64,000 nucleotides of DNA, from the NCBI GenBank assembly GCA_973895155.1, contig OZ316898.1:1-64000 (forward strand). The letters are read 5' to 3'. A model generated the notes under the pieces. It did not search any database. It was not told where the DNA came from and worked only from the letters and a program-made list of their open reading frames with translations. Positions 2,725-63,200 of this stretch are shown in pieces. The position numbers and the translations under genes are program-made. Each line of letters starts with the position of its first letter. The first letter of the stretch is position 1. The DNA is from Marsupella aquatica. Taxonomy: Eukaryota > Plantae > Marchantiophyta.

Positions 2725-3730
2725 GTGAGACGAAACTAGACGCGTCAATTTTTCCGTTTCTCATGTCTCGAGTAAGGCACGAATTAGAGTGGAGCCAATC
2801 CAGTACTTCACGGTGAATTCTAGCACACTATTGTGGCTGCGGTAGTAGGCAGATCGGTGCAGATTGACTTGTGTGTTCCGACAATGAGTGATTCTATAAA
2901 GCTGTGAAGAGGGTCTATATATGGCGGATCTTTATAGGTACGGATGGCTCATAGGCAGTTTTGTTGACTTTCGTGGTCGGAAGCTGCCTTCAATCTGTCC
3001 CGAGATAAGGCTGAGAAATGCTTGCCATATTCAGGGGAAACTAGGTTCTCATTGTGTGTAAATTAAGGCTTCAAGAAAAAATGACTAGTCTTGAGGGCTA
3101 TAGTTCAATTTTTATTGATCATTGATCTGAGGTTTTGTCCTTCTTCTACATTGCAGGATGTTGTGCATCTATAGTGAGAAATAATTATATCTCGTCATTG
3201 AGTTTGATGACCTGGACTTCAAGAGGCATGGACTTCTCCCCACATTTTGAAATTACATTCTGGTGGGTGCAATAGGTCCAATTTATATGTGTGGTGCAAC
3301 GTTACATTGAAAAACCTCAATTGGTGCTTCTACTAGAGCAAGGTTGAGGTGAGCCGGGGAGTTGGAGTTTCTATCTAATCTTTGCAATTCATATTTCAAT
3401 GAGATCTGTGCAGACACATTGACCGTGTATTTTTCTACAAGTTTTATTCTTCAAAAATCCAAAAAATGACATTTCCACAACCCACTCAAGTAAGTAACAT
3501 AATATCTATTTTTTTCAATCATTTTTAAAAAAATTATTAATATAATAGACATTATGGATTTAAGTAACTAAAAAATATTATATTATTACAAGTTTATATT
3601 AATTTTTTAATCAAAATTCTGATTGGTAATAAATATTTACTATATTTAATAGTGTAACAGTTTTATTTAAAAAGTTTGGAAAACAATTTGATTAGTACTG
3701 ACACAAAAATGCAATTTGACAATTTTGCAG

Positions 3731-5107
3731 ATGCTCCATAAACGAAGGGAGAGGAGAAAAAATGAAAATAAATTTCATGAATATGGCGCCGAATTTTCTA
3801 TCATAACATTTTGTTCAATATGGGATTATCTAAGCAAATTATGTGAATCTAAACAACAATTTATTTTATATTGGATTTTAAAAAATGAAAATATTTTTGT
3901 ATATTTTGTTACACACATTTTACAAATAAATGTGTCCAATTTTTCAAGAGCTAAATTTTTGAATGGGTATAACAACTGCAGAAGTGCAATTTCACCAATT
4001 CTCCCTCTTCAAACACTTCAACAAACCGAGAAAATCTTTCATCATCATCAACAGAGACAAAAATTGCCTCCACTATTGAAAAAATTCATGGGAAAATTTC
4101 ACATCCTTAACCTATCCCAACTCCGTACCTTACAAGTAGAGAGGGTAGCTTCTTGTAAAGTTGACAATACATTCTCTTCAACACAAGTAGAAGTGCAACA
4201 AATATCAAAATCACAACTGAAAAAATTGACTGGAGTGATAATGGGAAATTGGAATGAAGACATGACTAAAACCAATCATAGTAATCTTACATTCACATTT
4301 GAGCGTTATCCATCAAATTTTCTAGTGATAGAGAAATCTGAAAATATTGTTTACTTTTACGACAAGTCAGGGAAAAAGCCTTGGCTTGTAGCAATGCTTA
4401 TGCACCAACAAATATTGGGAGTGACAACATTACAATTCATTCGAAAACTTTTGAGTGCATTGTTTGTTGCTCATTCTCCATTTCAAAGAGGCGAGGGGAA
4501 AAAAGCTTTTGACAGCTTCATGACAGGATATGGTCCTTGGAATAGCAGTTACATGGGTGGCCGTTTGACTTATTACACACACCAGAAGAAGATGAATACC
4601 ATTTTCGATGATTGCCTTGATGTCAAAGATTTTGAGAAGTGGATCGATAAATATTCACATATTGAACTTATGGATATTATATTGGGGCTTTATATGTGGT
4701 GGTGCCCAGAGATGATAGAGTGCTTTTTGGAATACTCTCATCCGTACTTACTATCATCTGATGGTGACAAATATCATGGAAGTGAAGAGCAGATAGGGGA
4801 GAATGTTAGACCTAGTACTTACCAATTATATATAAGTGAGGATTATTGTGTGCAAACACATGCTGATGATGATGCAACTGACTTCACCTTAGCGTATGCT
4901 AGTCATCCTGACCATTTCCTTTCAGCAATCGATTTTGTAATTCCAGAGTATGGAATTCGATTGCCAATTAGAGATGGAAATCTATTTGCATTTCGGAGCG
5001 ATGTTGTTCATGGTACAGGCTTTAGAATGAAAACATCGAATCCTGCATATGTTGGAGCTATTACCGTGAATAAAAACCTCAGCAGACTGATGCAAAAATT
5101 ACATTAA
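3731..5107 (+). CDS. TET/JBP-like Fe(II)-dependent dioxygenase (copy 1)
   Basis: Uninterrupted ORF (track 3716..5107). The ATG at 3731 follows acceptor ttttgcag|. Motifs: MTGYG, then YISEDYCVQTHADDD (HxD at about 4859), DFVIPEYGIRLPIRDGNLFAF and VVHGT (distal His at about 5009), i.e. the HxD...H triad in a TET/JBP-type DSBH context. Homologous over its full length to 16076..17518. Confidence 0.8.
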   Translation: MLHKRRERRKNENKFHEYGAEFSIITFCSIWDYLSKLCESKQQFILYWILKNENIFVYFVTHILQINVSNFSRAKFLNGYNNCRSAISPILPLQTLQQTEKIFHHHQQRQKLPPLLKKFMGKFHILNLSQLRTLQVERVASCKVDNTFSSTQVEVQQISKSQLKKLTGVIMGNWNEDMTKTNHSNLTFTFERYPSNFLVIEKSENIVYFYDKSGKKPWLVAMLMHQQILGVTTLQFIRKLLSALFVAHSPFQRGEGKKAFDSFMTGYGPWNSSYMGGRLTYYTHQKKMNTIFDDCLDVKDFEKWIDKYSHIELMDIILGLYMWWCPEMIECFLEYSHPYLLSSDGDKYHGSEEQIGENVRPSTYQLYISEDYCVQTHADDDATDFTLAYASHPDHFLSAIDFVIPEYGIRLPIRDGNLFAFRSDVVHGTGFRMKTSNPAYVGAITVNKNLSRLMQKLH

Positions 5108-16075: not shown

Positions 16076-17518
16076 ATGGCAAAACGAAAGTTTTGGAAAG
16101 TGAACAAACAAATGAAGGAAGATGGCAAATATGAGTATGAGAAAATGAAATTTGCAATGGACGTTTTCATTCAAATTTTTTCAGCGATCATGATATTGCA
16201 TCCACGTTCACAAAAGTTTGCCATGTTATTTCTTCTTCAAGAAGATAATATTTTTCAAGCATTTGTACAAAATGTATTGAATATTAAACATACTGTATCG
16301 AAAGCAATGATATATAATGCTTACTATAGATTTAAAGAAATTGGACCACCAAAAACCTTTACTTCTTGCGCATGGGAGAATATCTGTGATATTCTTGATC
16401 ATCATTATTCTTTAGATTCAGTACCCTATAGTATAAGAAAATACATCCATTTTCTTAGGTCATCTACCTATATTGAAGAGTGTGTAAAAAGAGAAAAAAA
16501 TATGCTAGAGAAAAAAGAAATGGTGTTTGAAAAAATTATTTCCCAATTTTGGTGGGGAAATGTGAATCCAATGGAATTAGTGCAAGGATTTTGGGGAAGA
16601 GTTGATGATGAAGGTGAATGTTTTTATCGCTTAGAATTAGAAAAAACATTACAAATACTTTCTAGAAGAAAAAACAAAGGGAAAGAAATTGAAATTGAAG
16701 AGGCACCTATATATAGGGAGCTTCCAATTTCTTACGTTGAAATCCAAAAAACAAAACAGGTTACGGAGATCTATGATAAAATCTCAAGTGAGCTAGTGGG
16801 TATCCATATTCGCCCTAAAGATGTTCATAAATCTTTTACTATATTGATGCGAACTTATCTTAAAGATCTTTTTTGTGCTCATCCAAGTTCAAAAAGATCT
16901 AAAACTAGAGCATCCTATATGAGTGAAATGGTGGGGTTCGGTCCATTTCACCATACATGGACACCTGGAAAAAATGTTACATCTTTCTACACTCATAGTA
17001 ATAAGTTAGTAAAAGCTTCAAAACCTTTAAAAGATTTTGGTAGATTTATTGATCGATTTGCACATGGGGCTGTGGTAGAAATTTTAATGTCTATGTGGTT
17101 TAGATATTATCCTACGTTATTACATACTTTTCTTAGATGTTGTAACCCTTACTTAGAAACTTCCCAATATATTAAGGAAGGTGTTGAGATACCATTTTTT
17201 GATAAGCACATGAAGAAGGGACCTCCTGCTTATCAACTATTCATTACTAGAGATTATTGTTCACGTTTTCATGTGGACAATGATAGGACAGAGTGGACAC
17301 TAGCATATACTAGTCACCCTGATGAACATATTTCACCAGTTGATTTTGTATTTGCCAAACATGGATTTATATTACCTTTGCATAATGGTGATTTATTTGC
17401 ATTCAAAGGCAAACATCTCCATGGTATGGCTTTTAGAAAACCAACAGAAAATCCTGCATATATTGCAGCTTTAGTTATGAATAGTGGCTTAGGACAATTA
17501 TTAAATAGAATAGAGTAA
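16076..17518 (+). CDS. TET/JBP-like Fe(II)-dependent dioxygenase (copy 2)
   Basis: Uninterrupted 480-aa ORF with the ATG right after acceptor ttttcag|. Motifs: MVGFG, FITRDYCSRFHVDND (HxD at about 17270), DFVFAKHGFILPLHNGDLFAF and HLHGM (His at about 17420). Clear paralog of 3731..5107. Confidence 0.8.
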   Translation: MAKRKFWKVNKQMKEDGKYEYEKMKFAMDVFIQIFSAIMILHPRSQKFAMLFLLQEDNIFQAFVQNVLNIKHTVSKAMIYNAYYRFKEIGPPKTFTSCAWENICDILDHHYSLDSVPYSIRKYIHFLRSSTYIEECVKREKNMLEKKEMVFEKIISQFWWGNVNPMELVQGFWGRVDDEGECFYRLELEKTLQILSRRKNKGKEIEIEEAPIYRELPISYVEIQKTKQVTEIYDKISSELVGIHIRPKDVHKSFTILMRTYLKDLFCAHPSSKRSKTRASYMSEMVGFGPFHHTWTPGKNVTSFYTHSNKLVKASKPLKDFGRFIDRFAHGAVVEILMSMWFRYYPTLLHTFLRCCNPYLETSQYIKEGVEIPFFDKHMKKGPPAYQLFITRDYCSRFHVDNDRTEWTLAYTSHPDEHISPVDFVFAKHGFILPLHNGDLFAFKGKHLHGMAFRKPTENPAYIAALVMNSGLGQLLNRIE

Positions 17519-21126: not shown

Positions 21127-21935
21127 TTTTCTGGCTGCAAACAGATTGTCGTCTGCTTACAAGTAGTTCTGGCACCTGCAGCACGTACGTACCGGCACCT
21201 AACGATGATCCTCTACCGTTACATACATTGACATCCTTAATTGGAAGGAGCCAGACAGTGCAGCAACCCCACTACTGTGAACTCGTTAACCCGTGAAGAA
21301 GTAATTCTGGCTCGTTCAACTTGGGATGTCAGAACAGGACTGCAATATAGGTCATGCACATGCGTGCACAATTGTAAGAGAGCAACGATGAAGAAAGCTG
21401 AAGCTTCATTGATTGCGGAATCCCACAAATCGATCACCACACAAACCTATTCTCTAATGAGACAACCAGTCATTCTCAATCCTGATATCTCTCACACTAG
21501 CACACTTCGCCCCTTGTAACATTCGATTGTGCTGACAGGTCTAGCTAGGCAGCAAGTATCACAATCACCACTTCCACATTTGTGACTTCTAGTCGGTCCC
21601 TCCCTCTGTCTGAGACCATAAAACTTAGCATGTAGACCCCAGTTGCCACCATGATTTCACAACCCTTCTATATTCCCAACCTCTGTCAGCCCTTGCACTC
21701 TCTAGCTCCATTTGGGACCCTTTTTGAAAAGTGGGAACAAAGATTGAAGACTACTTCTGCCCCCCTTGGGGCCTCTCTCCTCGACCAGTGAGAAGAAGGA
21801 CAAGACAAAGTTTAGGGTGGAGAATGAATACTGCACATCAAAGCACCGAGAGGGGGGGGGGGGGGGAACGGAGCAGAGAAATAAACTCAGTGATTTAGTT
21901 TTCACAGGCCTGCCAAGGCAAGATGCATGAAACAA

Positions 21936-22319: not shown

Positions 22320-25300
22320 TCACCGAAATTCAGGATACTTGATCCTCACAATGGTTGCTACAAGACGCATAAAATTGTTGCCCAGAGCCTCAGGACTTGT
22401 AGACACAACCCATTCACACAGCTCCTGGTCACTTTTCCCTTTGATTTCAGGAATTGCTCGGAATAAATCGCTCTGTATGTTATCAAATCGCCATGCCTTC
22501 CACACAAAAAGCCGCAATCTCTCTCCTGATTCATCTTCACACTGATCTCCATACAGCCCTTCATGAAATCTCATCCCACTAGGCTGGTGTGGGAAGTGAC
22601 ACTTGAAACAAGTGTCTGGTCGAGAAGGAAACTTGTTATCGCAATTTGCACGGTTGTGTGTTCCTAGACACTTCACACATCGTCCCCGTACATAAGGACA
22701 TTGCAAAATACCATGAGGAACACTCTTTGAGAGGGGACTCCAACACATCAAGCACTTTTTCCTATCCCCAGCAAATTTACGGATGATACAAATCTTATTC
22801 ATGGCTTCGTCAATTCTTTGTTTGATGAGTGTTGGTCGAGCTCTTGCCACAACCGTGGTTGTGGTTCCTTTGCCTTGGGATGATCCGAGTGATGATGCTG
22901 GTGTTGTTCTTTCACCTGGTGCTGTAACCCTAACACTCTGTCCTCCTTGTATGTTTTGGGAGATGCTCCCCTGAGATACAATTTCAACCACTTCTGACCT
23001 AGCTTGTGATAATTCTTCGGCCTCATATTCCATTGGTAGTTCCTGATTGTCTGCTGCTTGGGAGCATATGTCACAAGGAATTGCATCCGGGATGAGGTAA
23101 CACATCTGTGGCTTACCATCAACGCTAGCATGTAGTGCAAAGCGACGACACATTTTTGTCTCCTCAATCCATTTGTTTGGAATCTTGAAGTTGGAGTCCA
23201 TCCTCAAGGCCTCATTGCGGTAGCTGGAGTTAGAAACAATAGTGCTTATTGCTAATAAACCATCACGCCCAGCTCGGCCAGATTCCTGATGAAATTGCTC
23301 AAAGGACCTGAAATTACCTCTGTGAATTACAAGTCTGATTGACTTGTAATTATAGCCAGAACCAATGACCCCAGTTGCCACCATGATTTCACAACCCTTC
23401 GACTCCCACTTCTTCAAGGTTTTCACGGTGTCTGCTGTGCTACATCCTGCATGCAAAAATGTACAGCACAAGTTCCTGGCTTCGAGTAGCTTTGCCATCT
23501 CTTGGACTTCATCTCTTGTTAGGCAATAGACAATGGCCCGGTCATGAACCAGGCTAGATCTCTTCCAATCTTGAAGCTGTCTAACTATTTCTCCATCCAT
23601 GTCAGGCACTTCCACAACCATGTATCGGATGTTTGGCCTAACAGTAGAAGAACGAACCCAATGTAATCTTGAACCCAAAGTCAGTTCGATATCAGATTGT
23701 TGTGTGGGTGGTAATGTCGCTGTTAATCCTATAATTTGACAAGGAACTTTCATTAGAGAAATCAGATTTCTCATTTTTGGACGGAAATGACACTGTAGTG
23801 TATGAATCTCATCAAAAACAATCGAATGCAATCTTTGTGTAGCTTGCAAGTGGTTTGCAAAGACACCAAATGTATCTGAATCAGCTGCAGTCTCGATAGA
23901 TACAAAAACAATTGCAGGTGTTACTCCTATCCCGAGTGCAAATCCACTTGTGAACACAGTGTGACCAATTCCTGCTTTTCTGCATTCAGATAAGTGACCC
24001 GATATGAGAGATTTGAATGGGACTACCACAATCACTGTTTTGTCCATCAATGTGGAAGGGGCCATGAAAATCAATGACTTTCCTGTTCCAGTGGGAAGTA
24101 CAGTTACAAAATCCACAGTGTTTTCAATAGCCAAAGCAACAGAGATTGCTTGTTCAGTTGACCTCCACCTTTTGTGACCCAACTTGTGTAGAGCTATGGA
24201 AGCTCTTATACTTGTGTCGTGACAGATGTGCAGTGCCGAATCAACATCTCCCACAACTGATGTTGATGGTTCTCCATAGGCAGGGCAATAAACAACCCTT
24301 GTCTTGCTTGGAACATGATCAATTTCAAGCTCAATGTCATGACGTGGACGTAGAACAGTAGTGGTTCTTGGAAAAGGATCTAGTGTGACTTCCCTGCAAC
24401 CTGTTGTTGAGCTATCCAGATGAATCAATCTTGGGGACTTATCCGAAAGATTAAGCAATGCATGCCACTTATCTGTAAATATTCGGAATGCTCTCAAGAG
24501 ATGTCCATCAATAGCTCTTAAATCTTTTACACTTTGAGCATAATGATGTCCCATTGTAGCTGTTGTATGTCCACCTGCCACATCTACAATATCATCAAGA
24601 TCTTGAGTGCGTTGGTCTCGAATCTTTTCTGAAAAAAATGCTGCTAGGTGTCGGTATTCTGAAAGCCCGAATGTGACTCCACAACGCTTAAAGAAATTGT
24701 TGTGTATGCTCTTGGAAAGATCATGTGCATCTTGCTTTTTATCCATATCAACGAACCAACAATCATCATAATTACGGGCAACCTCCTTTCCCCATATTTT
24801 CTGTGCAACATAAGATTGTGTAGGCCTCACCAAACAAAAGTATACCAGAAACAGAGTTCTTAAAGAACTTGGAAGAAACCGTATAAGTGGTTTCATTGGA
24901 GCACCTGTATTTGCACCTTTATGATAGGTTTGAAAGAGCGCTATTGTATGATGCTCTAACAATTTTGTTGTTGGATCATCATCTGGGCCTGCTGTTGCCC
25001 AATAAAATGACCTCTCGCTTGTGGCTGTGTTGCGAATCAAGAAACTGTTGTACTCTTCGCCCCTTGCTGGTAGACCGGCAGTGAAATGTATAAGCAGATT
25101 CAATTTTTCTTGTAAATCAGAGCAAGCAGTCATCCACTTATAAAGTGTGATATCATTCCAAATGACATCATTTCGATCTGTCCGCCCGAGAATAAAGTGT
25201 CCTCTAATCTTAGGATCAACAAACAAGTGTGTTAGTAGATCGAGGCCATGTTGCTGAAGAATCCGGTTGCGAGGATCTATGACAAAGTTGTACCCAACTT

Positions 25301-27281
25301 CTGTGTTGTTGACATCGTCGTAAATAGCACGACTCTCCTTAAGTAATTTGTCAACCCAATCTGTTCGGAGACCAAGAAGCACATCACAATTTAAAATTGA
25401 GTGGGCTTCTTGAATAATAGCATGCACCATATCTCGAAAATTGTCGATTGTAATAGATTCACCATCAACTAGACATGCTGTATTATTGGCATTCAATGGT
25501 ACTAGTCTTGGCCATACTGGAGTCCCTGCAGTAATCCTATTTGCCAAGCGCAGAGATTGCGATACAATAGTAAATGGAGTAGGTAGTGCTATGTCACTTA
25601 AATATTGAAGAAGTCGATCAGCTTCTTCATTAAGAATGGTGCTTGGGTTTTTATGCCAAAAACATTGTGCAAGGTGCATCAAAATGGTCACCCTAGCCCA
25701 ATATTTGAGTATCGCCATTGGTTGTGTAAGATGACGAACATGCCGAAATGAATACTCTTCTGCTTCTGGACTGTGGCCAACTTTTATGAGTGAATGTAAA
25801 ATAAGAAACCGAGTGAAAATACAGTTCGCTGCTCTTCCTGCTTCAAGTGTTGCAGGCATCTTTGGAGTCCAAAGATGAATCAACACATTATGTAGAACAG
25901 CTAAATCAACATTGTCAATAGAATTGTCATCTAATTCATTGAGTTGACTCATGAATTTTTGAAGAGCAATTTCCATTTCTTCTCTGTTTGTTTGAAAAAC
26001 ATGAATGTCCGAACTAAGCTCATTAGAAGATGATCGAAGCAAGCAGAGAATGAATTCTGTGATTATATCACAGTACCTACTCCTTGATGATTTTGAGTTC
26101 AATTGATTGAATCCCACTGCAACATCATCATTGATATTTGTCTTCTCCACTAGTCTTCTCAATCTGTAATCCACCTCTTTAAGAACCAAATCTTGTACAT
26201 TGTTCATGTAGATAGTCACCACTTGACTGACATATGAGAGTGGAGATTTGCCCTGCTTTGGTGGTGGGAGCATCTGTGCTTTCACCTGCAAAAATGGTAC
26301 CCCTTTTGGCATGAATTGGGCCGCAAGCTCATGCCATTTAGACTGTGCTAGCCATGGAGTTAGCTCAGCAATTGGAGGTAGAAGTTCTAACCGCAAAGAC
26401 TGAAAATGGTCATCAAACTCCTTTGTGATTATAGCCCTCAAACTTTTAGATTGCAAGTGACAGTCATCCCCATCGAGATTGAGATTGTGATGTTGAACAC
26501 TGAAGTATTTGAGGCCTATAACACGATCTGAGAGGATTTGAACTTGGCATTCACTCTTCACATTGACATAGGACAACTCAGGATGTTTTCTCAAACGATG
26601 ATTGGACATTGACCTTTTCTCCCCACAATAGTAGATGCATTGTTTGCAAGAAAAGCCGTGTCGAATGACAACACCTGGTACTGGAGAAAGCAATGCAGCT
26701 GGTGGATCTCTTGTATATGGTAATATGGATGTATCATCCATGCTTGTAAAAGAGAACTGTTGTAAGCTCCTCAATAGTTGATGACTGTCGTAGTCTGATG
26801 CTATTCGATGACACCTTGATTTCTCCCGTTGATGCTTTTGAACATGATGAATGATATTGATATTTTCATTGTATATGAGTACCGAATGACACTCTATACA
26901 TACAAGGAAAACCAATTCCTCATGACGAACAACGCAGAGATTAACACTTCTCAAGATCTCTGGTGTACCAGAATGATCTGGTGTAATGCACAATCCTTCA
27001 TTAACCGCCAAGTCGTGTGGATCAACAAATCTTTCGACTTGATTAACATGGATTGTGTCATAGTGTCGGCGAAGACTATCGCCGGGTGTGTAATACTGAG
27101 AACACATATTATCGGGGCATGCGAACATCCCATTTTCAGACTTGTGGAGGATCTCCACAGTGCCATCGCAATGCTTGAATTTGAACGTCATCCTGTGCTC
27201 AAAACGTTTGTGAGCATCTCTTGCTCTTGCTGATTGAAAAATCTGCTCACACGCACTACATGGAAAAATGGTTGTCTCCAT
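22320..27281 (-). CDS. Zn-finger + tyrosine-recombinase-like + RecQ-family helicase fusion protein (resembles fungal telomere-linked helicases)
   Basis: Intronless 1653-aa ORF. N-terminal C2H2 fingers (CSAC..HKRFEH; CPDNMC..HYDTIH; CIEC..HHVQKH; CKQC..HRLRKH). YR-like series AGLPARGEE / YHKG / EYRHLAA / GGH..HHY. RecQ/SF2 motifs LPTGTGKS, DEIH, LTAT, HAG, VAT and QESGRAGRDG, the RecQ Zn module CRR..C..CDIC, and C-terminal Cys/His knuckles. Confidence 0.9.
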   Translation of the reverse strand: METTIFPCSACEQIFQSARARDAHKRFEHRMTFKFKHCDGTVEILHKSENGMFACPDNMCSQYYTPGDSLRRHYDTIHVNQVERFVDPHDLAVNEGLCITPDHSGTPEILRSVNLCVVRHEELVFLVCIECHSVLIYNENINIIHHVQKHQREKSRCHRIASDYDSHQLLRSLQQFSFTSMDDTSILPYTRDPPAALLSPVPGVVIRHGFSCKQCIYYCGEKRSMSNHRLRKHPELSYVNVKSECQVQILSDRVIGLKYFSVQHHNLNLDGDDCHLQSKSLRAIITKEFDDHFQSLRLELLPPIAELTPWLAQSKWHELAAQFMPKGVPFLQVKAQMLPPPKQGKSPLSYVSQVVTIYMNNVQDLVLKEVDYRLRRLVEKTNINDDVAVGFNQLNSKSSRSRYCDIITEFILCLLRSSSNELSSDIHVFQTNREEMEIALQKFMSQLNELDDNSIDNVDLAVLHNVLIHLWTPKMPATLEAGRAANCIFTRFLILHSLIKVGHSPEAEEYSFRHVRHLTQPMAILKYWARVTILMHLAQCFWHKNPSTILNEEADRLLQYLSDIALPTPFTIVSQSLRLANRITAGTPVWPRLVPLNANNTACLVDGESITIDNFRDMVHAIIQEAHSILNCDVLLGLRTDWVDKLLKESRAIYDDVNNTEVGYNFVIDPRNRILQQHGLDLLTHLFVDPKIRGHFILGRTDRNDVIWNDITLYKWMTACSDLQEKLNLLIHFTAGLPARGEEYNSFLIRNTATSERSFYWATAGPDDDPTTKLLEHHTIALFQTYHKGANTGAPMKPLIRFLPSSLRTLFLVYFCLVRPTQSYVAQKIWGKEVARNYDDCWFVDMDKKQDAHDLSKSIHNNFFKRCGVTFGLSEYRHLAAFFSEKIRDQRTQDLDDIVDVAGGHTTATMGHHYAQSVKDLRAIDGHLLRAFRIFTDKWHALLNLSDKSPRLIHLDSSTTGCREVTLDPFPRTTTVLRPRHDIELEIDHVPSKTRVVYCPAYGEPSTSVVGDVDSALHICHDTSIRASIALHKLGHKRWRSTEQAISVALAIENTVDFVTVLPTGTGKSLIFMAPSTLMDKTVIVVVPFKSLISGHLSECRKAGIGHTVFTSGFALGIGVTPAIVFVSIETAADSDTFGVFANHLQATQRLHSIVFDEIHTLQCHFRPKMRNLISLMKVPCQIIGLTATLPPTQQSDIELTLGSRLHWVRSSTVRPNIRYMVVEVPDMDGEIVRQLQDWKRSSLVHDRAIVYCLTRDEVQEMAKLLEARNLCCTFLHAGCSTADTVKTLKKWESKGCEIMVATGVIGSGYNYKSIRLVIHRGNFRSFEQFHQESGRAGRDGLLAISTIVSNSSYRNEALRMDSNFKIPNKWIEETKMCRRFALHASVDGKPQMCYLIPDAIPCDICSQAADNQELPMEYEAEELSQARSEVVEIVSQGSISQNIQGGQSVRVTAPGERTTPASSLGSSQGKGTTTTVVARARPTLIKQRIDEAMNKICIIRKFAGDRKKCLMCWSPLSKSVPHGILQCPYVRGRCVKCLGTHNRANCDNKFPSRPDTCFKCHFPHQPSGMRFHEGLYGDQCEDESGERLRLFVWKAWRFDNIQSDLFRAIPEIKGKSDQELCEWVVSTSPEALGNNFMRLVATIVRIKYPEFR

Positions 27282-27999: not shown

Positions 28000-29460
28000 T
28001 CAATGTTTGGTTGTAGATTGGGTTAGGAAATGTGGGTTGTGGCATGGGTTTAGGGTCTTATGTTGGGAGTTGAGAAAGACTGGAGTTACAAAATTTGGTG
28101 TGGTGTTGGGGCTGAGGGGGTTGGGAGTTGTGTGTTGGGGATTGAGGGGTTGTGGGTTCAAGGGGAAGTTGTGTCTTGGGTTGGGTAGGTTGAGAGTTGT
28201 ATGTTGGGGAGCTTGGTTGCAGATTGGGTTAGGAAATTTGGGTTGTGGCATGGGTTGGGGGAGATGTGTTGGGGGTTGAGAAAGTCTGGAGTTAGGGAGT
28301 TAATTTGTTGTAGAGTTGGGTGTTGGGGGTTAAGGGATTCATTTGGGGAGTTGTGTCTTGGGTTGGGTAGGTTGAGAATTCTGTGTTGGGAGTTGAGTAA
28401 GTTGGGGAGTTTGGTTGTAGGTTAGGTTAGGAAATGTGGGTTGTGGCATGGGTTGGGGGAGATGTGTTGGGGGTTGAGAAAGTTTGGAGTTAGGGAGTTA
28501 ATTTGTTGTAGAGTTGGGTGTTGGGGGTTGAGGGATTCATTTGGGGAGTTGTGTCTTGGGTTGGGTAGGTTGAGAGATTTGTGTTGGGAGTTAACACAGT
28601 TTGGAGTTACAAAATTTGGTGTTGTGTTGGGGTGTGAGGGGGTTGGGAGTTGTGTGTTGGGGATTGAGGGGTGTTGGGGATTGTTGGGTGTTGGGGGTTG
28701 AGGGATTGGAAGTTGTGTCTTGGGTTGGGTAGATAGATAGTTGTATGTTGGGGGTTAAGGGAGTTGGGGAGTTATGTGTTTACCGGTTGAAGGAGTTTGG
28801 AGTTTGGTTGTGGGTGGGGGTTGACATTGTGGGTTGGGGGAGTCGTGGGTTGGGGATTGAGGGGTTGTGGGTTCAAGGGGAAGTTGTGTCTTGGGTTGGG
28901 TAGGTTGAGAGTTGTGTGTTGGGAGTTGAGTGAGTTGGGGAGTTTGGTTGTGGGTTGTGGCATGGGTTGGGGGAGATGTGTTGGGGGTTGAGAAAGTCTG
29001 GAGTTAGGGATTTAATTTGTTGTAGAGTTGGGTGTTGGGGGTTGAGGGATTCATTTGGGGAGTTGTGTCTTGGGTTGGGTAGGTTGAGAGATTTATGTTG
29101 GGAGTTGAGAAAGTTTGGAGTTACAAAATTTGGTGTAGTGTTGGGGGGCTGAGGGGGTTGGGAGTTGTGTGTTGGGGATTAAGGGGTTGTGGGTTCAAGG
29201 GGAAGTTGTGTCTTGGGTTGGGTAGGTTGAGAGTTGTGTGTTGGGGGTTGAGTGAGTTGGGGATTTAATTTGTTGTAGAGTTGGGTGTTGGGGGTTCAGG
29301 GATTGGAAGTTGTGTCTTGGGTTGGGTAGGTAGACAGTTGTATGTTGGGGGTTGAGGGAGTTGGGGAGTTATGTGTTGGAGGTTGAAGGAGTTTGGAGTT
29401 TGGTTGTGGGTGGGGGTTGACATTGTGGGTTGGGGGAGTTGTGGGTTGGGAGTTGCCGGG
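28000..29460 (+). repeat. G/T-rich, strand-asymmetric degenerate tandem array (GGGTT/GGGGTT/GGGAGTT motifs)
   Basis: The + strand is almost C-free. Blocks such as agttgtgtcttgggttgggtaggttgaga and ggcatgggttgggggagatgtgttgggggttgagaaag recur many times. Confidence 0.9.
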
Positions 29461-29844
29461 GAAGTTGTTTGTTGGGATAGAGACAACCATGTTGTAAAAG
29501 ATGGACAAGAAAGATGATAAAGAAAATCCAACACAAAAGGGAAAATCAACACTAAACCTTTGAACCTTTGATCCCTGAGTATAGACAGCCACAACAAGGG
29601 CAGACTGACACATTGGGCAGTCAGTTGTAAAAGATGGACAAGGAAGATGATAAAGAAAAGCCAACACTTAGTCTAGAAAGAGGGGAAATTCAGAGAAAAT
29701 CTGGACTGTCAATAAGAAGAGATAGATGGGCAAGATCATGTGCAAGGACTTCAATTCAATCCAATCTTCAATGGAAAATCCCAGTTCTTACAATATACGG
29801 TTAACATAATTATGTATACAAATCATCATTCCTGCTTATATGTC

Positions 29845-30055
29845 ACAAGTATCTCCTCGACAAGACAAGTCAACAATAAATATCAACCTGCTTATCCGCC
29901 ACAAGTATCTCCTCGATAGGACAAGCCAACAATAAATATCAACCGTGAAAAGTCAAAAATAAATGTTAGCCGTGGAAAGTACCTCCTTGACACGACAAGT
30001 CAACAATAAATATCAGCCATCGTAACAATAAATATTAGCATGGAAAGTCAACAAT
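29845..30055. repeat. Short repeated motifs near the putative element end
   Basis: gacaag(t/c)caacaataaatatca recurs at about 29864, 29920 and 29994, with partial copies nearby. Confidence 0.7.
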
Positions 30056-30208
30056 GAATGTTGGCCGTGGATTTTAAATGAACGGGCCAGATGCTTGTAT
30101 ACACACGACCACACCATCTTCTTCACGACCGCCACTACACTTGTTACAGGCCTCCAAAACAGCCACACAGCCGCTGCACTACGGCCGTAATGCGCCGATA
30201 ATATATAT

Positions 30209-45454: not shown

Positions 45455-48295
45455 ATGGCCACTCTGGAGAAATTACACTTTCCAGCCCTATTGGCAGATG
45501 GCAATAGTTACTTAACCTGGTCAATAGATGTAGAGACCTACTTCGCATCAATACAACTAGAGGATACATTAATTACTGATGACAATTTAACATTGCAACA
45601 GAAGGCCAAAGCTGTATTTCTACTTAGACAGCATTTGACACCATCACTGAAGACACAATATATGAGTGATCTTAATCCCCGTCTATTATGGGACAAATTA
45701 AAAGCTCGATTTGACCATATGCGAGAGGTCTGGCTCCCAGAAGCCCGCAGGGATTGGTTTAATCTACGTGTCATGGATCATACTTCTATAGCAAATTATA
45801 ATAGTTCTCTATTTCGTATTACATCTCAATTGGAGATGTGTGGCCACCCAGTTGCAGACTTAGACAAAATCGATAAAACGTTGAGTACTTTCCCAGAGGC
45901 CAACATCGCCTTGGGAACTCAATACAGGAATATGCAATTCACAACTTATTCTAACTTAATTGCACATCTCCTAGTAGAGGAGAAACAACAAATTGTCTCT
46001 CTACAGAATGCAAGGAAACGACCACCAGGCACTGCACCAATACCACAGAAACCAGAAATTAATTACAATGCCCCAGAAGACCAACAACGAAATATAAAAG
46101 GCCGGGGTACACAAAGAGGTGGATATAGAGGACGAGGTCGCAACTCAAATTATAGTGGAAGGGGAAATCAGTATGAAAATACCAGAGGTCGAGGCAGCAG
46201 AAGCCGTGGCCGGGGTAGAGGAAGAGGACGTGGCAGAGGTCACGCCCAATCATCTGACAACACACGAGAAGACCGAATGTGTTATAGATGTGGAAAAATT
46301 GGCCACCTAAAGAAAGACTGCTGGGCTTCTGACCAAGCGGCTAAGAGGCACTCAGAAGCAAGAGCTAAGTTAAAGCAAAATCCAGATGGCAACTATATGG
46401 AATTGGAAGAGGAGCTACCATCTTATCGAGAAGAAACTGATATGATAGACCAATCCAACGCTGAAGCTCATCTGGTGACAGCAGAGCCACCATATCCCTC
46501 CTCCAACGATCCCAATTTAGGTATCATTGATAGTGGGACATCCCACACTATCCTAAAAGATAGGAGTTATTTCCAAGACATCACTCCATCTGCCAGGGTA
46601 ATGACAACCATATCAGGTACGAATAAGATTGAGGAAGGAACAGGAAAGGCTACTGTCAAATTTCCCCAAGGAACAGTCATTAACATCGAAGCAGCTATCT
46701 TTGCACCAAAAGCTACTCGAAATTTGATTAGCTTCAAAGACGTTGTTGCTAATAATTATCAACTCCGCACAGCAATGCTCCAGCAGAAACCTACTTTGCA
46801 AATAGTAGCCATGACCACAGATGGAATTCAAATCAAAGAGATACTACCTCTAATACCCCCGGGTTTATATGCAGCCCCAATAACAGCGAACTATGCCACA
46901 GCAGAATCAAATAATCTTACATACCTCTGGCACTGTCGACTGGGGCACCCGGGAATAAATATGTACCGTCGCATCATCAATGACTCACGAGGAATCCCTA
47001 AAGGAGTGCGTCCATCTATAAATCATAAGCAATGTCTGGCATGTTCTCAGGGGAAGCTGAGTACACGCCCAGCTACACAAAAGACCATCTATACTATCCC
47101 TAAATTCCTGGAACGTCTAAATGCTGATGTCTGCGGGCCAATACACCCTCCAAGTGGGCCTTTCAGATATTTTTTAGCCATTGTAGACTCTTCAACTAAA
47201 TGGCTCCAAGTTTCATTAATTTCTACTCGTAACCTGGTCTTTGCCAGAATCTTAGCCAACTTATTAAAACTTCGAGTACAATTCCCAGATTGTCCAATTA
47301 AGAAATTGCGAGTGGACGGGGCAGGGGAATTTACCTCCAGAGCATTTGACGACTTCTGTATGACAGCGGGGATCGACATTGAATACTCAGTTCCTTACGT
47401 CCATTTCCAGAACGGCATAGCAGAGTCAGTCATAAAAAGGATTCAAATGATAACAAGGCCACTTCTATTGAACTCTAAACTACCACCTTCAGCATGGGGA
47501 CACGCTGTCCTCCATGCAACAACTTTGCTTAAGTATCGGCCGTCAGCATTTAATACTAAAACCCCTCATCAACTTGCATTCGGTTTACCCCCTGATCTTT
47601 CACACATTAGAGTATTCGGATGTAAAGTGATGGTACCCATCCTTGGGCCACATCGATCCAAACTTGGCCCACAGAGGAGAGAAGGTATTTATATTGGCCA
47701 TGACTCCTCGTCTATTATCCGCTATCTGGAACCTAGCACAGCTGATGTATTTAAAGCAAGACACGCTGACTGCCATTTCTATGAGGAAATTTTCCCCTCA
47801 TTACTTAAGGCGCCAACTACATCACACGACATAACACCAGTACAGCTCAATTGGAATAGCAGAAATCTACTCAATCAAGATCCAAGAACTCAAAGTGCAG
47901 ACGAGGAGGTAAGGCGCTTATTACATCTCCACGAAATGTTGGAAAAGATTCCTGACGCTTTCAATGACGCAGCAAATGTGACCAGATCACATGTTGAAGC
48001 AGTCAATACCCCAGCTCGGATTCAGCTGCTGCCAACTCAAGCAAAGGAAACCTTACCTAAGGCGAAGAGAGGACGCCCACTAGGATCCACTGATTCTCGC
48101 CCTCGCCAGAGACGTGCACAAACGGTAAATACTGAAACCACATTTAATCTGGTCAGTATCGAACCAGAGAAAAAGAGGGCACCAGATAATGAAGAAATGT
48201 CTATTCAATACACACACAGGACACATTTATGCTCGATCAAACACAATAATAGACGAGCAGTTTGCTTATCATATAGCCCAATCCATCTCAAATGA
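45455..48295 (+). CDS. gag-pol: Copia Gag-protease-integrase portion of the polyprotein
   Basis: Bianca-like Gag (NSYLTWSIDVE...KAKAVFLLRQHL), CCHC knuckle CYRCGKIGHLKKDC, protease IIDSGTSHT, WHCRLGHPG..CLAC, and integrase DVCGP/RVDGAGEF/QNGIAES. Confidence 0.9.
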   Translation: MATLEKLHFPALLADGNSYLTWSIDVETYFASIQLEDTLITDDNLTLQQKAKAVFLLRQHLTPSLKTQYMSDLNPRLLWDKLKARFDHMREVWLPEARRDWFNLRVMDHTSIANYNSSLFRITSQLEMCGHPVADLDKIDKTLSTFPEANIALGTQYRNMQFTTYSNLIAHLLVEEKQQIVSLQNARKRPPGTAPIPQKPEINYNAPEDQQRNIKGRGTQRGGYRGRGRNSNYSGRGNQYENTRGRGSRSRGRGRGRGRGRGHAQSSDNTREDRMCYRCGKIGHLKKDCWASDQAAKRHSEARAKLKQNPDGNYMELEEELPSYREETDMIDQSNAEAHLVTAEPPYPSSNDPNLGIIDSGTSHTILKDRSYFQDITPSARVMTTISGTNKIEEGTGKATVKFPQGTVINIEAAIFAPKATRNLISFKDVVANNYQLRTAMLQQKPTLQIVAMTTDGIQIKEILPLIPPGLYAAPITANYATAESNNLTYLWHCRLGHPGINMYRRIINDSRGIPKGVRPSINHKQCLACSQGKLSTRPATQKTIYTIPKFLERLNADVCGPIHPPSGPFRYFLAIVDSSTKWLQVSLISTRNLVFARILANLLKLRVQFPDCPIKKLRVDGAGEFTSRAFDDFCMTAGIDIEYSVPYVHFQNGIAESVIKRIQMITRPLLLNSKLPPSAWGHAVLHATTLLKYRPSAFNTKTPHQLAFGLPPDLSHIRVFGCKVMVPILGPHRSKLGPQRREGIYIGHDSSSIIRYLEPSTADVFKARHADCHFYEEIFPSLLKAPTTSHDITPVQLNWNSRNLLNQDPRTQSADEEVRRLLHLHEMLEKIPDAFNDAANVTRSHVEAVNTPARIQLLPTQAKETLPKAKRGRPLGSTDSRPRQRRAQTVNTETTFNLVSIEPEKKRAPDNEEMSIQYTHRTHLCSIKHNNRRAVCLSYSPIHLK

Positions 48296-50093
48296 TACAC
48301 CTGATCCCTATACAATCAAAGAAGCACAGAAAAGGCCCGATTGGCCACAGTGGAGAGAGGCTATCAATACAGAAATGGACGCATTAATCAAAAGACAAGT
48401 ATTCGGCCCAGTTAAGGTTGTACAACCAAAGAATGACTATACAGATAGTCGTTTTATATTCGTTAGAAAACGCAATGCCCAAGGAGATGTCATAAGATAT
48501 CGAGCAAGGCTTGTAGCGAAAGGCTACACCCAAATCCCTGGAAGGGATTACGATTTAACCTATTCGCCAGTTATGGATGTAACTACCTTTAGGTACTTAA
48601 TATCTTTTTCAAGAAAGCATAAACTCAAAAACATACTCATGGACGTGGTAACTGCGTACCTATATGGAGTCTTAGACTCCGAAATATATATGAAAGCTCC
48701 AAAGGAATTGCTCGAAAGAGTGGTAGAGCACATCCAGGGGAAGAATATACATACCCTAAGTCAGGACATGAAGTCGGGACTTCGACAGATTGTCCCTGAT
48801 GATGACATTAAAGGCCTAGTGTTGAGCAGTGGCAACACACTCAAAGAACCACTCCAGTACCCAGGTAAATATGGGACTGGACAGCAGGCATTTGCTGTGC
48901 AAGTCCTTAAATCAATAAACGGACTGAAACAGAGCGGACGCATCTGGTATCAGACATTCAAAACTAAGATGCAGACTCTTGGCTTTATAAATGACGACCT
49001 CGCCCCTTGCATTTTTATAAAACACCTAGCACCTGAGTTCGTGATATTAGCACTATATGTTGATGACGTCAATCTGTTCGGCACCCCCAAGCTATTAAAG
49101 CAGACTATTAATACAATGAAGGGCATCTTCGAAATGAAAGAACTGGGAGAACCGACGTATTGCCTCGGTCTACAGTTCGACCACCTGCCACAAGGTATGT
49201 TTATTAGTCAATCAACTTACACAAAGAAAATTCTTCGACAGTTTAACATGCAGAATGCTTACTCAGTCTCGACTCCCATGGAGATGCGATCCCTGGACAC
49301 CACTAAAGATATGTTTAGAAGGAGACAAGAAAATGAACCACTTCTTGATGCAGACAAGCCTTATTTATCTGCAATCGGAGCTCTCCTCTATCTGGCGAAC
49401 AACACCCGTCCCGACATTTCATTTGCAGTGAGTCTCTTGGCACGACATAGCGCCCAACCTACTATTCGCCACTGGAACGGCATCAAACGACTATTTCGTT
49501 ATCTTCAAGGCTCCATGGATATGGGCCTGTATTTCGCCAATGATAACCCGGATGAACTGCAAGGATACGCGGACGCTGGATATCTATCCGATCCGCATGA
49601 CTCGAAATCTCAGACTGGTTATGTCTTCTTGCAAGGCAACACAGCAATATCATGGCGCAGTACAAAACAAACCTTGACTACCACATCGTCCAATCATTCA
49701 GAAGTAATAGCTCTTTACGAAGCAACAAGAGAAGCGCTATGGCTTCGAAACATCATAAACCACATCCACAAGAATACTGGTAAGCCACTACTCACCAAAC
49801 CGACGATTATCCATGAAGATAACAAAGCTTGCGTGGACCAAATCAATGCAGGATATATGAAGACAGACCGCACGAAGCATATCGACCCAAAATTTTTCTT
49901 TACCCATGAACAGATAGGGCAGCACATCAATGTGCACTGGAAGAGCTCCCAGGAGAACTGTGCTGATCTATTCACGAAGCCATTACCCGCCAGCCTCCAT
50001 CGAAAGCACGTAGCAGCGATCGGCATGACAAGATTGTCGACATTGCGCCCGCCCGTCGACACACAAACGAGAGAAACTCCACAATTTGAATGA
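48189..50093 (+). CDS. pol: Copia reverse transcriptase-RNase H portion (frameshifted from the upstream ORF at about 48215)
   Basis: YRARLVAKGYTQ, MDVVTAYLYG, GLKQSGR, LYVDD, GYADAGY, EDNKAC, RTKHID and ADLFTK. Confidence 0.9.
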   Translation: MKKCLFNTHTGHIYARSNTIIDEQFAYHIAQSISNDTPDPYTIKEAQKRPDWPQWREAINTEMDALIKRQVFGPVKVVQPKNDYTDSRFIFVRKRNAQGDVIRYRARLVAKGYTQIPGRDYDLTYSPVMDVTTFRYLISFSRKHKLKNILMDVVTAYLYGVLDSEIYMKAPKELLERVVEHIQGKNIHTLSQDMKSGLRQIVPDDDIKGLVLSSGNTLKEPLQYPGKYGTGQQAFAVQVLKSINGLKQSGRIWYQTFKTKMQTLGFINDDLAPCIFIKHLAPEFVILALYVDDVNLFGTPKLLKQTINTMKGIFEMKELGEPTYCLGLQFDHLPQGMFISQSTYTKKILRQFNMQNAYSVSTPMEMRSLDTTKDMFRRRQENEPLLDADKPYLSAIGALLYLANNTRPDISFAVSLLARHSAQPTIRHWNGIKRLFRYLQGSMDMGLYFANDNPDELQGYADAGYLSDPHDSKSQTGYVFLQGNTAISWRSTKQTLTTTSSNHSEVIALYEATREALWLRNIINHIHKNTGKPLLTKPTIIHEDNKACVDQINAGYMKTDRTKHIDPKFFFTHEQIGQHINVHWKSSQENCADLFTKPLPASLHRKHVAAIGMTRLSTLRPPVDTQTRETPQFE

Positions 50094-60205: not shown

Positions 60206-63200
60206 AATGCACACACAACAAACTAGGGGTGAAACTCACCCCCAATATTCCCAAATCTCACTAGTACTTAAAAAACTGGGGATGACACCCTAAACCCTAA
60301 ACTTAAATTTTTGGGTTTTGTGTTAAACGGTTGCTGTTTGACAAAGCACTACTCTCCATAACTGATGGTGTACAATTGCTTTTTGGATATACATGCGATG
60401 AAAGAAACCAGTGTAATCATTCATAGTTTTACTAGCAATGTCGCTAGCAAGAATAGTACACATTGTAACATTGCAATAGGACAAACTGTTCAAACATTTA
60501 TTCCAAATTCAACCCAACCGTTTTGAGATATAACTTTGTTACACACCAAACGTCCGAGAACTCTTGGAACTTCGAGGTCAAGGGTCCGGACTCAGGAGAA
60601 CTAGATTGTTACAAAATGTCTATGCCCTAGAAGCTGGACTACTGATCATGGACTTCTGATCAAGGACTTGCTGCCTTGTATGCATCGGAATCGGAGTCAG
60701 AAATCGTATCATAGTCGGATGAAGCGAGTACATTTTCCGTCCAATAGTTGTGAATCTCCAGGTCCCTCCAGTATGACTCCTCTCTCTTCTGCTTCTCTGA
60801 TACCCCCTTAGTGAGGGGAACATTTGAGCGAGAAGACAAGGGAGTTTGGGAGACCGACTTGGAAGATGTCTCCTTAGAAGGTGTCATTACCTGTGATTCC
60901 TTGCAGACAAAGGGAAAGACTCAAGTGGAAGAAGATGTACTACTCTTCATTGCATGGTTATACTACTCTGCTTTGGTTGAGGTTAGCTTGGCGGGGAGTC
61001 TAGTGGACCGTTTGTTTTGGCGTTATATCGGAGGACTTTGAGAATCCATTTTGGAGGAGCTTTACCCTGTTCCGTGCTATTTCTCTTTGTAACTGAAACC
61101 AATGCGATTCAGATTATTTATAATCTTATGCAAGATCTACTTATGTCGACAAACCAGAAAGCAGATGACATTCAATACCTCAAAGATGACCAAATAGCAG
61201 GGAGAAAAGTGACAGAGAACGTAGATACCTCAATCCGGAACCGACTTACAAATCCCTGGTGCGTATGATTGCCGAGGAACTCTTTGCAATGCTGCAATGA
61301 CAGTAGAACATGACAGGCCTTCGAGTCCCGCAAAGAGAAGAAGAGAAGCGCGTTTGGAGTCTCGCGGTGAAGAGAAGGAGAGCGCAAAACAATGACCGAA
61401 ATGGAAGGAATGGAAATGGTTCGGAAGGTCCGAGTGAGATATAGGGGATGGTGGAAAGCGGGAGATCCTACACAACGGTTTCAGGATCCGGTCTGTTAGG
61501 GGGTACGATGAGTGTCACGCTTGATAGCGTATGGAGCTTTGGATTCTGTCCGGGGATGCGCTCCCAACATTGCTTTAGTCAAAGACCGTTATTCCCAGTC
61601 CGTTCTCATGATGCATTTTTCACGTTGTTAAAGACCGCACACCAAAGTTCGTGGGAGAATTATGGGCTGCACGATGGCTAGCGATTTTGCTGGCCTGATG
61701 TACTTTCAAATAGTAGGGTCAATTCTGGTTGGTTTGAGTGGCCGGTTGTGCGAGAAATACATGATATGTACAAATATACTGCCGACGATAGGTTTCGTAA
61801 TGTAATAATGAAGTTTATGTTGTAAAACAAATTACTTTTAGGCTAGCGAGTGTCAATTCATGCTACAGAGGTAATTTCCATGCCAGATTTTGCATATGGC
61901 AAGGAGAAAATGTTCCAGGAGGAATTTTTTTACTGTTTACTCGCACGTTACAATGACCCGCTGAAACTGGCATCCTTACAGGTCATCAAAGCTTAGACCC
62001 GGTCGAGCTAGCGGAGCAGGCGATAGGGAACTTTAGGAAGATGGACGAACAAGCCAAGGCACTAGCATGGAGACACAGAGCAAAAAGAACTAGAGAGCAC
62101 AACGAGGCCTGCTTAAGAGAAGCAGCTACTGCTCAAATTAGATTAGGAGAATTTGGTGAGGCTCCTAGTGGGGCTTTTGGTGAAAGGGGGCAATGTTGAC
62201 TCTCGTACAGAAAAGCCAAGAGGTGGGCTGACTGCTCTCTTGCGAAAGAAACCAACGGTGAAGGATAGGCTGGCTCGCAGGCTACTGAATGGGCGTGTCA
62301 CGGATGCAACTGTTAGTCAGCTAGCCAGGGATCAAGATGCAGCTTACCGTGAATCATTTCGCAATCAGTGGACAATGAAGTAGTTGTCTTCATGAGTCCT
62401 TCAAAAGGTTCCAGATTATGTGTGTAGTCAACTGGACCATAGAAACTGATCGAGGCGAACGTCCTGGTACAGTTTTTAAAGTTCCATCTTGAGATTGGTA
62501 AGCTGCGAAAGGGGAAACAGTGAGCTAATATGGAAGTTGTCAAGCTTATTCTAAGACTTCCGCAGGTTTCTGAAAGGAAGACTGGGAGTAAACTAAAGAG
62601 AGATATGGAAGACTTTACCTGGTGAGTTAAGGCAACTCATAGAAGAAGTTTTCTTTATGGCATCTGAATTTCAGGACTTGTGAGTCTCAAAATTTATCAG
62701 TCCGGCCGCGGTGTTAATGGCAAAGGACCGTCCTGAGATTTGCGTTGGTTGCCGAATACTATCCATCGTTTGAAAGTTTGGCAGTTGAATGAGAGGGGGC
62801 TTCTTTTTTGCGTCATATGAACTACGTTGTAAAGGGCAGAATGTACAGAAGAATTGCATTTAGTGTAGTTCTGTATTTGTTTTGACAGCTCGGTCTGATT
62901 ATTTCATAGTGGATTGCTGTCAGGTTTTGGAAAGGAAGAAGTGAAGGCTCACGCAACCATGCCTCTCAGATCAATCTCTTGGAAGACCATTATTGGGATT
63001 AAATTGTCAGATTTCGTACATGATCTCACGACTTGCAGAGTGAGCAAGGCAGATATGTCAAAGATAGTTCAAAAGGATCTCACAATGAAAAAGAGTATCT
63101 AATTGGCAGCCGATGTAGGTATGCAGTAGTTCCTATTTGGGGGAAACTCTAGCAGCTGTAGCTTATTCTGCTAACTTCCCACTCAGTTTCCGATGCAAAG

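Follow-up and report, generated by a model that had tools for sequence, protein, structure and literature searches.

An intact telomere-linked helicase gene in a liverwort, with a predicted tyrosine-recombinase/topoisomerase IB-fold domain beside its RecQ helicase

For more than 25 years, genes for telomere-linked helicases (TLHs) have been recognised at the chromosome ends of fungi. By their published definition they encode C2H2 zinc fingers, N-terminal pairs of which are a stated feature of the family, then a TLH domain of about 250 amino acids (aa) immediately upstream of the helicase, and then a RecQ helicase; the same 2024 preprint describes the family as subtelomeric gene arrays tied to chromosome ends, notes a parallel with the yeast Y' elements, and states that the function of TLHs and the role of their specific domain are still undetermined (bioRxiv 10.1101/2024.02.27.582403). 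In the searchable literature, TLHs are reported only from fungi and one choanoflagellate. Here we describe a TLH gene from the liverwort Marsupella aquatica, located in a stretch of 64,000 nucleotides (nt) that was analysed as a whole (assembly GCA_973895155.1, contig OZ316898.1, positions 1 to 64,000; hereafter the window, to which positions refer unless a relative's contig is named). The gene is a single uninterrupted open reading frame (ORF) on the minus strand, at 22320-27281, encoding 1653 aa with neither stop nor intron. A run of 1653 open codons cannot arise by chance in DNA of about 41% GC, and the ORF is therefore a real and currently intact coding sequence. To judge from the sequence, it is an intact member of the TLH family in an unexpected host. 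The family is known and the host is new: intact and decayed liverwort members extend TLHs to land plants. A first-pass annotation, made from the letters of the window alone, had already called such an element unexpected in a plant, in agreement with the range of hosts in the TLH literature.

The same annotation had likened the layout of the protein to that of fungal telomere-linked helicases, and this was borne out by the order of its parts, with a C2H2/OrsD region followed by a TLH domain and a RecQ helicase (Table 1). Four C2H2-type motifs were recognised by motif scan (aa 8-29, 55-78, 128-150 and 212-233), where the family definition calls for at least two at the N terminus. A Pfam scan, which the annotation had proposed, recovered OrsD (PF12013, formerly DUF3505), DEAD and Helicase_C; OrsD was matched at an E-value (E) of 3e-07 with the whole protein and of 6e-08 with its N-terminal piece, and is also present in full-length relatives. 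The helicase carries the motifs GTGKS (aa 1065-1069), DEIH (aa 1157-1160) and QESGRAGR (aa 1332-1339) and matches the NCBIfam model recQ_fam, TIGR00614, over aa 1032-1425 (E 5e-47; score 160.7, below the curated cut-off of 219.8). Its closest solved structures by sequence are BLM and RecQ (both at E 5e-28), RECQ1 and WRN (E 5e-28 and weaker over the four). A four-cysteine cluster lies within the TIGR00614 match and occupies the place of the zinc-binding subdomain of RecQ helicases, while Pfam matched neither HRDC nor RQC in the 1653-aa protein and gave no significant match in the Cys/His-rich C-terminal tail. The absence of an intron and of a Pfam-detectable HRDC, together with the TLH architecture, agrees with the earlier view that this is not a housekeeping RecQ. 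With one relative, P0002 (1654 aa), the alignment runs from aa 13 to aa 1673 and spans the whole ORF, and a homology scan of the 64-kb window returned no second TLH-like match.

To place the middle of the protein, aa 400-1000 were used as a query in an HMMER/phmmer search of 1.84 billion representative proteins. The middle domain had 1146 relatives at E<=1e-3, of which 316 also passed E<=1e-10, and many of them are proteins of 1400-1900 aa with an identical OrsD / middle domain / DEAD / Helicase_C layout. Named relatives come from Ceratobasidium, Leucocoprinus, Marasmiellus, Schizosaccharomyces japonicus and the chytrid Cladochytrium. More specifically, aa 579-946 are homologous to the domain in the same position of fungal OrsD+DEAD+Helicase_C proteins, such as S. 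japonicus SJAG_05173 (E 1.9e-17) and proteins of Marasmiellus, Leucocoprinus and Ceratobasidium. The comparison set thus consists of S. japonicus, basidiomycete and chytrid homologues, with the canonical Magnaporthe oryzae and Schizosaccharomyces pombe TLH proteins outside it. Word-indexed protein searches recovered nothing beyond the query, a Calypogeia protein and one Logan fragment, which reflects a limit of the method and not rarity of the family.

The first-pass annotation had proposed that a domain resembling tyrosine recombinases (YRs) is fused to the RecQ helicase, and a YR fold is indeed predicted for that segment. AlphaFold2, run on aa 540-990 with an alignment of 38 homologues, gave a mean predicted local distance difference test score (pLDDT) of 81.6 and a predicted template modelling score of 0.80; for the core, aa 705-950, pLDDT was 84.9. 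In the model, R740 and R877 each stand at the start of a helix, K788 lies just past the first strand of a beta-hairpin, and H905 is in the loop that follows the R877 helix. These are the positions held by catalytic residues in tyrosine recombinases. An exhaustive structural comparison with VIA-align against 48,161 Protein Data Bank (PDB) representatives ranked Xer-type recombinases at the top, with type IB topoisomerases scoring below them. Several results weigh against this assignment. Foldseek also ranked YRs first, at values without significance (E 0.03 for the whole domain and 0.28 for the core), so that the fold call rests on VIA-align. No YR came up when PDB sequences were searched with a profile; Pfam searches with the 38 domain homologues at E<=10 matched no family, including PF00589, DUF3435 and the Crypton-associated domains; and hhalign against an alignment of Cre, XerD and lambda Int returned nothing in local or global mode. 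For the S. japonicus homologue in the ESM Atlas, only sub-threshold leads to YRs and NDC10_II were obtained. Finally, Y914 falls in a low-confidence loop in both AlphaFold2 models, and the catalytic residues were assigned from their motif context, their place in the secondary structure and their spacing, and not from a residue-level superposition.

The residues themselves were followed through the same 38 homologues, whose mean column identity is 16%. Within 24540-25064 they occur in the order that the first-pass annotation had given, in the contexts AGLPA-R740-GEE, YH-K788-G, EY-R877-H, GG-H905 and HH-Y914, and all five are conserved across the family. P738, R740, E743 and K788 are invariant (38/38); R877 is kept in 37 of the 38 sequences and H905 in 35, the remaining three having gaps; Y914 is likewise found in 35, with two gaps and one Trp. 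For comparison, the textbook catalytic residues of Cre, XerD and lambda Int were confirmed in fetched sequences. The spacing of 9 between H905 and Y914 equals the His/Trp-to-Tyr spacing in these three enzymes; the distance from Arg II to the His is 28 here versus 22-23 in them; and the R-x-x-E following Arg I and the R-H at Arg II match XerD. The annotation had gone further and spoken of a complete catalytic set, and in this it was mistaken. In the window protein Ser874 stands where the HxxR His would be, and family members have A, S, R, N, Q or K there; this, too, counts against the assignment. This His is typical of recombinases and absent in type IB topoisomerases. Since the HxxR His is not conserved, what the family retains is the pentad R-K-R-H-Y, as is typical of type IB topoisomerases, and not the full recombinase hexad.

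Taken together, the predicted structure and the alignment show the TLH domain to be a domain of tyrosine-recombinase/type-IB-topoisomerase fold with a family-wide R-(E)-K-R-H-Y set, in which Y914 is the presumed nucleophile. The modelled fold and its phosphoryl-transfer site are well supported, and the site is probably functional. We also considered that the domain might bind DNA without any catalysis, as in Ndc10 or QRICH1, in which case the protein would be no more than a DNA-targeted helicase. Invariance of R, E and K and retention of R, H and Y in at least 92% of the 38 sequences, at such low overall identity, are unexpected for a dead site, and we hold this possibility to be very improbable. 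The enzyme itself may recombine, relax or resolve DNA.

Table 1. Features of the TLH gene and its product, in window coordinates.
Feature	Position	Strand	Basis
Intact single-exon TLH-family ORF, 1653 aa	22320..27281	-	ORF call, window-wide homology scan, P0002 alignment
C2H2 zinc finger 1, aa 8-29, C-x2-C-x12-H-x4-H	27195..27260	-	Motif scan
C2H2 zinc finger 2, aa 55-78	27048..27119	-	Motif scan
OrsD (formerly DUF3505), aa 120-233, with two further C2H2-like motifs	26583..26924	-	Pfam PF12013
Family-specific middle TLH domain, aa 579-946, without Pfam family	24444..25547	-	phmmer, hidden Markov model envelope, AlphaFold2
Catalytic core, predicted tyrosine-recombinase/topoisomerase-IB fold, aa 705-950	24432..25169	-	Predicted structure, conserved residues
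Putative catalytic codon R740	25062-25064	-	
Putative catalytic codon E743	25053-25055	-	
Putative catalytic codon K788	24918-24920	-	
Putative catalytic codon R877	24651-24653	-	
Putative catalytic codon H905	24567-24569	-	
Putative catalytic codon Y914	24540-24542	-	
RecQ-type superfamily 2 (SF2) helicase core: DEAD aa 1044-1194, Helicase_C aa 1246-1341	23259..24152	-	Pfam, TIGR00614, PDB matches
Four-Cys cluster C1378, C1394, C1403, C1406	23064..23150	-	Sequence reading; inside TIGR00614 match
CCHC-type zinc knuckle, aa 1535-1547, in Cys/His-rich C-terminal tail	22641..22679	-	Motif scan

The nearest relative of the window protein is a copy in another liverwort, Calypogeia fissa (locus L001), which is 58% identical over 1580 residues and carries 5 in-frame stops and a frameshift. 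A second lineage in the same species (locus L021, 8109-12776, scaffold CBCUJL010000002.1) is 33% identical, contains stops and frameshifts and has lost the DEAD domain by deletion; it is internal, at about 8.5 Mb of a 46.8-Mb scaffold. Both C. fissa copies are pseudogenes, and identities to the window range from 58 to 64% and from 33 to 39% for the two lineages. Pairwise comparison of the window, L001 and L021 revealed no shared flanks; synteny across related species, which the first-pass annotation had named as a sign against a transposase, is thus not seen with either Calypogeia locus. In a maximum-likelihood tree of 139 domain sequences, the window pairs with Calypogeia P0001 (support 99), and both fall inside a clade of 21 sequences (support 99) whose only labelled members are three liverwort sequences. 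The rest of the clade stems from unlabelled metagenomes and sequencing runs and includes one member with a telomere of TTAGGG type, which is not the plant repeat.

These data bear on the question of whether the gene is fungal, either by contamination of the assembly or by a very recent transfer from a fungus to a plant. All named relatives outside liverworts are fungal and most close relatives come from unlabelled metagenomes, which speaks for such an origin. Against it, C. fissa supplies the closest relatives, in the form of two divergent copies on scaffolds of considerable size (285 kb and 46.8 Mb); the ORF runs on into its flanks without a change of depth, in runs that carry two organism labels and stem from two studies; its GC content is similar to that of the surrounding DNA; and all labelled fungi lie outside the 99%-support clade, at path distances of 3.0-4.1 from the window, with the liverwort copies at 0.56 and 1.76. 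A fungal contaminant or a very recent arrival is therefore hardly credible to us. The data fit long residence and diversification in bryophytes and argue against contamination and against recent transfer from Dikarya; an older transfer would be left without direction or date. The horizontal acquisition suggested by the first-pass annotation accordingly finds no support as a recent event.

Linkage to a telomere was observed in a relative of the same clade. The unit encoding P0154 is 99.8% identical in two metagenome contigs, L018 and L019. In L019 it gives way, 1 kb past the stop codon, to (TTAGGG)n, which forms the end of the contig; L018 (at about 6809) diverges from L019 (at about 6822) right after CAGTTAACC and continues into a second TLH-like ORF. 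The two contigs thus display real telomere linkage and a tandem arrangement. The window copy does not share this setting: (TTTAGGG)3 is absent from the 64 kb, that is, from the 22 kb on one side of the ORF and the 37 kb on the other, the sole (TTTAGGG)2 is at 60288, 33 kb from the ORF, and no telomere relics were found near the ORF.

The observations at chromosome ends raise the possibility of a maintenance factor retained by the host, in which recombination intermediates at telomeres or subtelomeres would be handled by the helicase together with a topoisomerase- or resolvase-like domain, for instance as a backup upon failure of telomerase, and the gene would multiply passively by subtelomeric segmental duplication. 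The topoisomerase-IB-like pentad lacking the recombinase-typical HxxR His agrees with this, as do the intactness of so long an ORF, the true telomere 1 kb from P0154 and the literature that ties TLHs to chromosome ends. Against such a factor, both Calypogeia copies are pseudogenes, so that the gene is dispensable there; neither the window copy nor L021 is telomeric; synteny is absent; and, among the public runs, no RNA run contains the ORF. We regard a retained host factor as unlikely.

Further environmental relatives were seen in Joint Genome Institute metagenome contigs (L007-L014; BBAY, LBB, BIB), where a TLH-like protein of 1653 aa, P0142, occurs in at least 8 samples with the same neighbours, namely a 1159-aa ORF with no Pfam match and, on the opposite strand, a 968-aa N6_N4 DNA methyltransferase. 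Several of these contigs begin at the same point, 2.7 kb upstream. Both neighbours were tried as conserved accessory genes of the TLH unit and rejected, as they have no counterpart in the window.

We then asked what can be said about movement of the gene. The first-pass annotation had taken the ORF for the transposase of a YR DNA transposon. Of that proposal the predicted YR-fold domain and its fusion to RecQ stand; the transposon itself has neither recognisable ends nor excess depth. Direct or inverted repeats bracketing the ORF were not found within 17.5-33.5 kb, nor was a target-site signature or an element boundary around it. More than 90% of the sampled words of the ORF are present in four public runs (two organism labels, two studies), and one fifth of them in a fifth run of a third organism label. 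In these runs, one 4.6-kb contig covers most of the ORF with 5 differences, at a depth of 182 versus 164 for the downstream flank. This flank-like depth implies that the window copy is unique at the 31-mer level and that any paralogues must be diverged, the copy number being read from assembled contigs, in which diverged paralogues are not countable. The missing termini, the absence of telomere repeats around the window copy and the silence of the RNA runs count against the explanation favoured below, as does the uniqueness of this copy at k=31 with flank-like depth, so that nothing here shows movement. An exact direct repeat of 34 nt was also noticed, at 21635-21668 and 23367-23400, one copy falling within the part that encodes the helicase and the second lying 650 nt past the stop codon; in the public runs this 34-mer forms its own contig at a depth of 365, twice the 182 of its neighbours.

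In its strongest form, the transposase proposal would make the ORF the enzyme of a compact autonomous Crypton-like YR DNA transposon with its own helicase, excising and integrating site-specifically at short targets. In its favour are the predicted YR fold with a conserved catalytic set, the single intron-free ORF, which is the sole unit that eight relatives' contigs have in common with the window, the internal, non-telomeric and non-syntenic sites in the window and in Calypogeia, the decayed Calypogeia copies, and environmental clusters of high identity over many contigs (P0142, with 22 cluster members read on 23 contigs, and P0011, with 16 members). Besides the missing terminal repeats and depth excess, the window protein gave no match to GCR1_C, DUF3504, PF00589 or DUF3435; the only boundary that could be defined, at L018/L019, is a telomere-addition or tandem-copy junction and not a target-site junction; and the literature describes TLHs as subtelomeric gene arrays. 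We find a transposon of this kind improbable.

The explanation that we favour as a whole, with a probability of roughly 0.55, is an intact TLH with a catalytic domain of predicted YR/topoisomerase-IB fold that belongs to a selfish birth-and-death family. Such a family fits the finding of copies that are partly intact and partly decayed, of sites without synteny, and of positions at telomeres as well as inside chromosomes; the pattern is no proof of a discrete transposon with fixed ends. According to this explanation, the protein would cleave and rejoin DNA by way of a 3'-phosphotyrosyl bond, with its own helicase unwinding the substrate or driving its branch migration and the zinc fingers selecting the site. 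By recombination the gene would spread copies of itself, at times together with adjacent DNA, among chromosome ends and internal positions, and would not act as a compact cut-and-paste transposon with fixed ends.

Several other features were recorded in the window. Two intact ORFs (3716-5107 and 16076-17518; 463 and 480 aa), TET/JBP-like by first reading, are both found to one side of the TLH gene; at 25% identity (E 2e-55) they are old paralogues, and Pfam matched neither. On the other side, beginning 0.7 kb upstream of the ORF start, 28000-29460 is a degenerate minisatellite of 1.5 kb, G/T-rich and almost free of C (GC skew 0.69), with units such as GTGTTGGGGATTGAGGG and periods from 17 to 198 nt. 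G- or C-rich arrays were also met near relatives, at 661-849 of contig L008 (GGGGATTA-like) and in L019, where (CCAACC)n lies about 0.5 kb before the telomere. The G/T-rich minisatellite was nevertheless rejected as a part of the conserved unit, since the Calypogeia copies and L002 have nothing of the kind nearby. Just past it, a short array at 29831-30066 is built of 56-nt and 22-27-nt tandem repeats (units ending ...CAACAATAAATATCAA). A homopolymer run at 21851-21865 (C on the minus strand) varies in length from one public run to another, X1 being 2 nt shorter there and X2 1 nt longer. Further away, 45455-50093 holds the interior of a copia-type long terminal repeat (LTR) retrotransposon (gag, zinc knuckle, integrase, RVT_2), spread over two overlapping ORFs and hence frameshifted.

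A broader and more tentative proposal, which we put forward as a possibility less probable than its opposite, is that the TLH genes of fungi, a choanoflagellate and bryophytes alike form a hitherto unrecognised class of autonomous mobile elements, "recombinase-helicases", in which an active YR/topoisomerase-IB domain and RecQ would copy them to chromosome ends and internal sites, at times along with adjacent genes such as the TET-like pair. If true, this would explain both the telomere linkage of TLHs and their patchy distribution across kingdoms. More generally, the conserved active site would give the TLH domain a concrete mechanism, cleavage and rejoining by Y914 coupled to unwinding, which could explain the multiplication of TLHs at telomeres or a role in telomere maintenance; the insight applies to the whole family. 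No link of TLHs to tyrosine recombinases or to bryophytes was found in the searchable literature, which leaves most subscription journals outside, so that a prior description is possible.

Compared with known systems, the window domain differs from the tyrosine recombinases (Xer, Cre, lambda Int, Flp) in having no sequence-profile similarity to them and no HxxR His, and in a long insertion between Arg I and the Lys; its fusion to a helicase has no counterpart in the YR or topoisomerase IB chains matched here. Type IB topoisomerases (poxvirus, bacterial and nuclear) are housekeeping or viral enzymes and not a multi-copy gene family. Crypton and Starship elements, the latter with a DUF3435 "captain", share with TLHs that they are eukaryotic, occur in fungi, have a YR-fold protein as their sole enzyme and spread within genomes; the window ORF differs from them in matching none of their domains (DUF3435, DUF3504, GCR1_C, PF00589) and in its lack of recognisable termini, and to our knowledge these elements encode no RecQ helicase. 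The Y' elements of yeast, with Y'-Help1, are helicase-encoding units of chromosome ends, either capped by a telomere or in tandem, as is the P0154 unit in L018/L019; the Y' helicase, as far as we know, is not of RecQ type and has no YR-like domain. The closest likeness is to the fungal TLHs (Magnaporthe TLH1, S. pombe Tlh1/2, Ustilago UTASa, and those of Metarhizium and Fusarium, with Monosiga besides), from which the window copy differs in its liverwort host and in having no telomere repeat array within 64 kb. The order of parts is the same in both, both are intron-free, multi-copy and prone to decay, and a member of the window's own clade adjoins a real telomere.

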